DNA of 23,204 nt from Haliotis rubra (taxonomy: Eukaryota): the NCBI RefSeq assembly GCF_003918875.1. It is one part of the record NW_025767631.1 of this genome. One strand, given 5' to 3'. This document shows positions 11,215 to 11,239 of the stretch, piece after piece. The stretch's first letter is position 1, and every line of letters begins with the position of its first letter. The translations under genes were made by a program, and so were the position numbers. Below the pieces are notes generated by a model. The model was not told the DNA's origin and did not search any database. It worked only from the letters and a program-made list of their open reading frames with translations.

Positions 11215-11239
11215 CTTGTCGTTGCATACAGCAGAACAT
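11215..11239 (-). CDS. Rho GTPase paralogue 1, coding exon 1 (MFCCMQRQ, 25 nt)
   Basis: caaaATG start and CAAG/GTAAGA donor. Phase 1 fits exon 2. Same length and similar sequence to the paralogue's exon 1. CCAAT and TATA-like elements lie just upstream. Caveat: the intron contains an N gap. Confidence 0.82.

Follow-up and report, generated by a model that had tools for sequence, protein, structure and literature searches.

The 25 bases at positions 11215..11239 of the window, i.e., of the whole 23,204-nt stretch of Haliotis rubra DNA analyzed here, are the real transcribed start of a Rho-type protein of this abalone. The gene that they open, referred to as gene A in the following, encodes what is, judged by its sequence, an atypical Rho-family GTPase. 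The cysteine motif at the N-terminus of this protein is most likely a fatty-acid membrane anchor that resembles the one of GAP-43 in looks only. We put the probability of the whole explanation, i.e., an atypical Rho protein in which an S-acylated N-terminal tip replaces the prenyl-CAAX anchor and in which the motif came from a 5'UTR exon, at about 0.62.

Gene A lies on the minus strand (11306+..9766) and its product comprises 217 residues. Its parts are as follows, where X1 to X3 are contig assemblies of public sequencing runs.

11240..11306, minus strand: 5'UTR part of exon 1 up to the limit of the X1-X3 contigs, without ATG
11215..11239, minus strand: coding part of exon 1, Met1 to Gln8 and the first base of Val9 (MFCCMQRQ/V), based on GT donor, phase-1 intron and contig joint
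10617..11214, minus strand: intron 1, 598 nt, GT..AG, based on sequence and contigs
10441..10616, minus strand: exon 2, encoding the remaining residues of the N-terminal tail, the P-loop GDGECGKT and switch I, based on Pfam Ras, contigs and splice register
9766..10218, minus strand: coding part of exon 3 and stop, with DTAGQE, TKQD, SAK and the polybasic tail, based on Pfam Ras and contigs

On the minus strand, 11239..11215 reads ATGTTCTGCTGTATGCAACGACAAG, i.e., eight codons from ATG to CAA plus a final G, followed by gtaaga. Exon 2 begins at 10616 directly after ...tcttccag, such that the codon G|TG split by intron 1 encodes Val9 and the N-terminus of the protein reads MFCCMQRQV. This is the peptide that a first-pass annotation had reported at the same coordinates, and two Haliotis RefSeq models agree with it. 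The 3'UTR continues beyond 9600 in the contigs.

Pfam Ras matches cover exon 2 (7e-10) and exon 3 (1e-29). The motifs of a Ras-type G domain, including CSAK, are visible in the translation of gene A and invariant in an alignment of the gastropod clade described below. Tree and gene structure point to the Rho family, i.e., the closest relatives are RhoA/Rho1, the clade stands beside canonical RhoA, and the intron after switch I is common to them. At the insert-helix position between G4 and G5 we find a segment of fitting length that is Ser/Lys-rich and variable. The AlphaFold model of the H. asinina orthologue P0001, which is 92% identical to gene A over exon 3, shows a confident, ordinary G domain with pLDDT values below 50 at residues 1-14, 138-152 (at the insert position) and 201-215. 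In this model, the cysteine motif is predicted to lie at the very end of a flexible tail that precedes strand beta-1. At the other end, the protein carries a Lys run followed by ...TGSVTCPFFAVK and ends in TCPFFAVK, i.e., there is no CAAX box, and no member of the clade shows the Cys at -4 of a classical prenylated Rho protein. A Cys at -7 follows the Lys run of gene A and is kept in three Haliotis species, where the tail is polybasic and then continues with C-P-F-F.

With canonical RhoA/Rho1, gene A shares the G1-G5 motifs, the catalytic Gln (DTAGQE) and the post-switch I intron at 52-57% identity. It differs in the missing CAAX box, in an 18-residue N-terminal tail that bears the Cys motif, and in the P-loop GDGECGKT, where Ala15 of RhoA is Glu or Asp within the clade. 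Furthermore, the clade departs from RhoA in switch I, in the strand after it and at Trp58, the insert region is of low complexity, and the start codon of gene A is found in exon 1, whereas that of the RhoA paralogues lies in exon 2. The acidic residue directly follows the equivalent of Ras-Gly12 in the P-loop of all clade members (GDGECGKT or GDGDCGKT; codons at ~10555-10535 in gene A), and Patella vulgata P0377 reads GDEKCGKT. Annelids and other organisms have the same Glu in Rho proteins that do carry a CAAX box (P0125-P0138). Such a substitution hints at an altered GTPase cycle.

The best protein matches to the window are RefSeq models of Haliotis asinina and H. rufescens (orthologues P0001 and P0002). 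The N-termini of the orthologues and of further clade members are listed below.

Haliotis asinina: MFCCMQRQ (RefSeq model)
Haliotis rufescens: MFCCVQRQ (RefSeq model)
Patella, two genes: MFLKCVSRQ and MFKCLRRQ
Gigantopelta: MLLFDCF
Babylonia and Nucella: MFCCFRG
Littorina: MFLCCVRG
Batillaria (P0244): MLFSCFGRK, behind 32 extra modelled residues that are probably over-predicted
Aplysia: MKSLFSSCIQRQ
Another heterobranch transcript: MKRFFSCFHRQ

Each full-length member has a Cys at residue 4-8 with hydrophobic flanks; in the heterobranch members the motif is located at residues 5-9 behind Met-Lys. In an alignment of nine members (A2), a single column within the first 18 residues is invariant, namely the one that holds Cys4 in gene A, while Cys3, Met5 and Arg7 vary (Val5 in H. 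rufescens, Arg3 in the paralogue gene B, and F/I/K/S in other snails). Among the three Haliotis species, a synonymous TGT/TGC difference in the Cys4 codon and one Met5 to Val replacement are seen in the 25 coding nucleotides. The conserved signal, as far as the alignment defines it, consists of hydrophobic-(x)-Cys-hydrophobic and then a polar or basic residue, and the exact M-hydrophobic-C-C-M-x-R likeness to GAP-43 appears as a feature of some Haliotis species. The spacing shared with GAP-43, which the first-pass annotation had called identical, is exact in gene A, but three of its positions (Cys3, Met5 and Arg7) are not conserved; likewise, of the Cys pair whose conservation it had proposed to check in orthologues, Cys4 holds throughout the clade alignment and Cys3 does not.

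A CAAX box is absent from every clade member found; their tails are Lys/Arg-rich, often with Phe or Trp. In a maximum-likelihood tree, all 17 such sequences form one clade (support 97/94), whose sister is a CAAX-less Lottia protein; canonical RhoA and a fungal Rho3-like sequence stand apart. Fungal Rho3, considered as a candidate relative, was rejected on this placement. All clade members found among the matches listed are gastropods. A profile search against 1.84 billion representatives added only Batillaria P0244 and Patella P0254 to the clade, its list being dominated by generic and fused Rho proteins, and its best 150 matches contained no clade member from outside the gastropods, which is weak evidence for a restriction to this class. 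A word search with the Aplysia N-terminus returned three relatives only, and in two of them the model is cut short and starts at an internal Met. No such subfamily appears in a published survey of the Rho genes of bivalves (PMC4669188), and the literature searched yielded no account of a Rho clade that lacks CAAX and bears an N-terminal Cys motif. The proteins themselves are already in RefSeq as unstudied predictions named 'rhoA-like'.

Two observations on individual members are added here. The Aplysia californica gene (L024, 2001-2864) is a retrocopy-like single exon whose insert region is enlarged by a long Ser/Thr-rich insertion. In Elysia and Plakobranchus, the models begin at an internal Met, such that the N-terminal motif has probably been missed.

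An N-terminal anchor makes sense since the gene A protein is without any CAAX box. Its tip shows the sequence pattern of N-terminal S-acylation, i.e., a conserved Cys within ~10 residues of the N-terminus, hydrophobic and basic flanks, and a flexible segment. In soluble proteins that are S-acylated, the Cys typically has hydrophobic or basic neighbours (PMC5364179). For gene A, we consider the reading as an acyl anchor somewhat better than an even bet. The proposed mechanism is as follows. The first ~18 residues would form a flexible tail ahead of strand beta-1, in which Phe2 and Met5 could make a first weak membrane contact. DHHC acyltransferases would then S-acylate the tip Met-Phe-Cys-Cys-Met on the invariant Cys4 and, in gene A, also on Cys3, while the polybasic C-terminal tail would add electrostatic affinity. 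A reversible acyl anchor would thereby stand in place of the ordinary prenyl-CAAX anchor of Rho proteins. A protein without prenyl group should escape RhoGDI. Membrane cycling would accordingly proceed by acylation and deacylation, not via RhoGDI. The Cys at -7 could be an acylated site instead or as well.

Judged by analogy, the closest functional precedents appear to be yeast Rho3 and vertebrate RhoJ, not GAP-43. In yeast Rho3, Cys5 is palmitoylated and residues 1-11 restore plasma-membrane localization to GFP-Rho3 (PMC4393305). Like gene A, Rho3 is a Rho-family GTPase with an N-terminal extension, here starting M-S-F-L-C, but it keeps its CAAX box and hence carries two lipids; the fungal Rho3-like P0370 starts with MSFLCGS and ends in CSIM. 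Since Rho3 falls outside the gastropod clade in the tree, its N-terminal Cys arose independently. RhoJ (TCL) is an animal Rho-family protein with an N-terminal extension, and it is described, with reference to earlier work, as palmitoylated on N-terminal Cys3 and Cys11 (bioRxiv 10.64898/2026.10.14.758331). In contrast to gene A, RhoJ belongs to the Cdc42 branch and retains C-terminal farnesylation, and both its motif and its lineage are unrelated. That is, N-terminal S-acylation is known in the Rho family, in these two cases alongside prenylation.

GAP-43 starts with MLCCMRRTKQVEK, in which Cys3 and Cys4 are S-acylated; this start suffices for membrane targeting, and its C3,4S mutant is cytosolic (PMC2994833). 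Membrane binding by the N-terminal 13 residues depends on Cys3/Cys4 and is reduced in single-Cys mutants (PMC2994833). The likeness of gene A consists in the Cys3-Cys4 motif as read from the letters (MFCCMQRQV vs. MLCCMRRTKQV). The proteins are otherwise unrelated, and the first ten residues of gene A contain one basic residue (Arg7) compared to four in GAP-43. An IQ calmodulin-binding domain, a PKC site and the acidic disordered tail of the GAP-43 family are missing. Since residues 19-200 are a Rho G domain, the gene A protein is no member of this family, which bears out the convergent origin that the first-pass annotation had proposed.

A first alternative is that targeting by the N-terminal tail does not involve fatty acylation and relies on an acetylated Met-Phe end that is bound by a receptor, or that the Cys serves redox sensing, metal binding or a protein contact. 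Arl3/ARFRP1 with Sys1 is an example of an N-terminally acetylated end that binds a membrane receptor, and starts of the Met-Phe/Met-Leu type are NatC-type N-termini. Indeed, most clade members begin in this way or place a pair of hydrophobic residues ahead of the Cys. However, the invariant residue is the Cys and not the residue after Met, and the extreme N-terminus is not conserved, as the heterobranch motif at residues 5-9 behind Met-Lys illustrates. In addition, the loss of the CAAX box in all members calls for another membrane anchor, and soluble S-acylated proteins usually have their Cys in such a hydrophobic and basic setting (PMC5364179). We regard this alternative as unlikely.

Less likely still is a main anchor at the other end of the protein, i.e., a polybasic or amphipathic C-terminal tail, in gene A together with the Cys at -7, with the N-terminal Cys in a minor or regulatory role, as in RhoU/RhoV or Rit-type proteins. 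In RhoU and RhoV (Wrch-1/Chp), the acylated Cys is C-terminal, the N-terminus is proline-rich, and the subfamily is a different one. Both are described as Rho-family proteins with special N- and C-termini that are anchored by S-acylation, not prenylation (PMC10903452). The Lys/Arg-rich tails of all clade members, often with Phe or Trp, fit such an anchor, as does the polybasic run of gene A with the C-P-F-F conserved in three Haliotis species. On the other hand, a C-terminal Cys is absent from gene B and most other members and the tails differ widely, while the N-terminal Cys is invariant. Anchoring at both ends is not exclusive, and the two probably cooperate.

The acyl-anchor reading presupposes that exon 1 is the true start. 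Contigs of four public runs (X1, X2, X3, X15) were aligned to 9600..11500. X1-X3 are small assemblies of assembled contigs from one study, for which the label RNA is a guess. All three skip exactly from 10616 to 11215, leaving a 598-nt gap with CT..AC ends on the plus strand, i.e., GT..AG on the minus strand, and they also skip the second intron of gene A (222 nt). The large DNA assembly X15, which covers both introns as far as they are sequenced, contains neither splice joint, and a search of the own genome found no intronless copy of gene A. Since the joint is absent from X15 and no intronless genomic copy was found, the joined 11215/10616 form represents spliced RNA. This supplies the junction for which the first-pass annotation had suggested an RT-PCR or 5' RACE check.

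Upstream of the ATG, the contigs extend to 11306, 11298 and 11296 (pieces 11215-11306, 11215-11298 and 11215-11296), such that exon 1 measures at least 92 nt, i.e., 5'UTR plus 25 coding nucleotides. The 25-nt micro-exon of the first-pass annotation has to be given up accordingly: a micro-exon is an internal exon of ~30 nt or fewer between two introns, and here the contigs run unbroken to 11306. An in-frame TGA is located upstream at 11314..11312 (minus strand), and no second ATG was found in the 181 nt upstream of the start codon.

That the first exon is mispredicted and translation actually begins within the N gap or at some other place, an outcome that had been allowed for at the outset, is very improbable. 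It is suggested by a 130-base N run within intron 1 (10628..10757), 11 bases upstream of the exon 2 acceptor, and by the end of the contigs at 11306. Against it, X1-X3 join 11215 directly to 10616, independent RefSeq models of other Haliotis species share the N-terminus, five other gastropod genes have the same structure, and in Aplysia the motif is encoded contiguously by an intronless gene. Misprediction is therefore refuted for the transcripts seen, while minor alternative first exons are possible.

In an alignment of H. asinina and H. rufescens with the window, restricted to 11120..11420, the GTAAGA donor is conserved in the three Haliotis species and intron 1 diverges immediately after it. 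The same alignment covers two upstream elements.

11391..11387, minus strand: CCAAT box, conserved in three Haliotis species
11375..11367, minus strand: TATA-like ATAAATATA, conserved in three Haliotis species

The segment 11367..11391 is the probable core promoter of gene A, whose transcription start is predicted near 11345.

Within intron 1, a repeat at 10800-10916 recurs in inverted orientation in the 3'UTR region of gene A (9600-9640, X2 contig); its word depth of 300-800 in the DNA run X15 identifies it as a dispersed family. X15 itself carries the same species label and differs from the window over 9600-11500 by ~2.6% (25 in 969 bases) plus small intron indels, so that either heterozygosity is high or this DNA stems from another population or strain.

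Why the motif has an exon of its own can be approached by comparing gene structures. The first coding part comprises 25, 28, 31 and 31 nt in Babylonia, Patella, Littorina and Gigantopelta, respectively, always with a phase-1 GT donor. A phase-1 intron after the motif is thus common to the clade genes including Haliotis; the Aplysia gene is intronless yet keeps the motif, as expected for a copy from spliced mRNA. In four canonical RhoA paralogues (contig C2522), whose 5'UTR introns were read from sequence alone, the ATG lies in the P-loop exon 9-13 nt after a polypyrimidine-AG acceptor-like site. In the four genes, the distance from this site down to the first codon of the R/K-K-L/M-V strand is 27, 25, 24 and 24 nt; measured from the intron 1 acceptor, it is 32 nt in gene A and 26 nt in gene B. 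The simplest reading is that intron 1 of genes A and B would be the old 5'UTR intron of RhoA and that the motif probably arose by extension of the reading frame into a former 5'UTR exon. That is, in a gastropod ancestor, the ORF of a RhoA duplicate would have been extended across the old 5'UTR intron into exon 1, and the motif would have been created as the ATG of exon 1 came into frame. Since intron 1 sits where the RhoA paralogues appear to have a 5'UTR intron, the separate exon is explained without shuffling.

Of the exon-encoded targeting module that had been claimed initially, it thus holds that the coding part of the motif stands alone on exon 1; it was not shuffled there and is likely a former 5'UTR exon. 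Descent of the exon from GAP-43 exon 1, which likewise encodes only the N-terminal 10 residues of the targeting domain (PMC5583208), is the least probable reading of all and exon shuffling was rejected: the M-hydrophobic-C-C-M-x-R match is exact in H. rubra gene A, but conservation of Met5 and Arg7 already breaks down within Haliotis or in the paralogue, the earliest state that the clade has in common is one Cys flanked by hydrophobic residues, the intron position matches the apparent RhoA 5'UTR intron, and 25 bases are too short for a homology signal. The parallel is an analogy, not common descent.

The own-genome Rho matches inspected on C2522 are canonical RhoA and include two alternative 3' exons (2215869-2216342 and 2223107-2223511). 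This cluster was also considered as a source of clade paralogues and rejected based on GDGACGKT, Trp58 and a CILL end on the one 3' exon terminus read.

The window contains a second gene of the clade, gene B.

19324..19348, plus strand: coding part of exon 1 (MFRCVKPL/E), 25 nt, phase 1, GT donor, based on sequence and H. cracherodii P0123
20098..20270, plus strand: exon 2 with P-loop GDGECGKT and switch I, based on Pfam Ras and splice register
20646..21077, plus strand: exon 3 with stop, based on Pfam Ras and splice register

Its product has 209 residues and a basic-hydrophobic tail that ends in ...FRKRGN, without cysteine and without CAAX. The start MFRCVKPL agrees with the MFRCVK paralogue with Cys4 only that the first-pass annotation had described, and the H. 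cracherodii RefSeq model P0123 similarly begins with MFRCVKPS. By analogy with the single-Cys mutants of GAP-43, it is reasonable to expect that anchoring of gene B by its single N-terminal Cys would be weaker or more dynamic. Genes A (9766-11306, minus) and B (19324-21077, plus) are arranged head to head, ~8 kb apart, and an own-genome search found no further close copy of either.

The surroundings hold several further elements. Between the two genes, 15134-16664 is a tandem array of ~46 copies of a 33-bp unit (88-93% matches), T-rich on the plus strand with an AT skew of -0.2 to -0.3. Another array, of 7.1 copies of a 70-bp unit (97% matches), is found at 665-1164. At 16785-17330 (plus), a frame split by a stop looks like the C-terminal portion of a DDE transposase of the Tc1/mariner type. 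It matches Pfam DDE_3 weakly (E 0.001) and is probably a decayed transposon. Finally, an exon-like frame at 3-197 (minus) has a weak Snf7 (ESCRT-III/CHMP) match (E 6e-4, below the Pfam cut-off) and may belong to a CHMP2-like gene at the left end of the window.

Rho GTPases are the textbook case of prenyl-CAAX anchoring with RhoGDI shuttling. On a tentative view, to which we give rather less than even odds, gastropods would possess an old, so far undescribed Rho subfamily that exchanged its C-terminal prenyl-CAAX anchor for an N-terminal S-acyl one by way of a 5'UTR exon. If true, these would be the first animal Rho-family GTPases anchored by reversible N-terminal acylation alone, and the subfamily would stand outside RhoGDI control, with a GTPase cycle perhaps altered by the acidic residue at the position of Ras-Gly13. 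The clade would be a natural experiment in which both the anchor type and the protein end were swapped, and it would offer a simple case in which a 5'UTR exon gave rise to a targeting signal. For abalone, this would mean that two adjacent head-to-head genes, termed 'rhoA-like' in the RefSeq annotation of related species, are unlikely to behave like RhoA.
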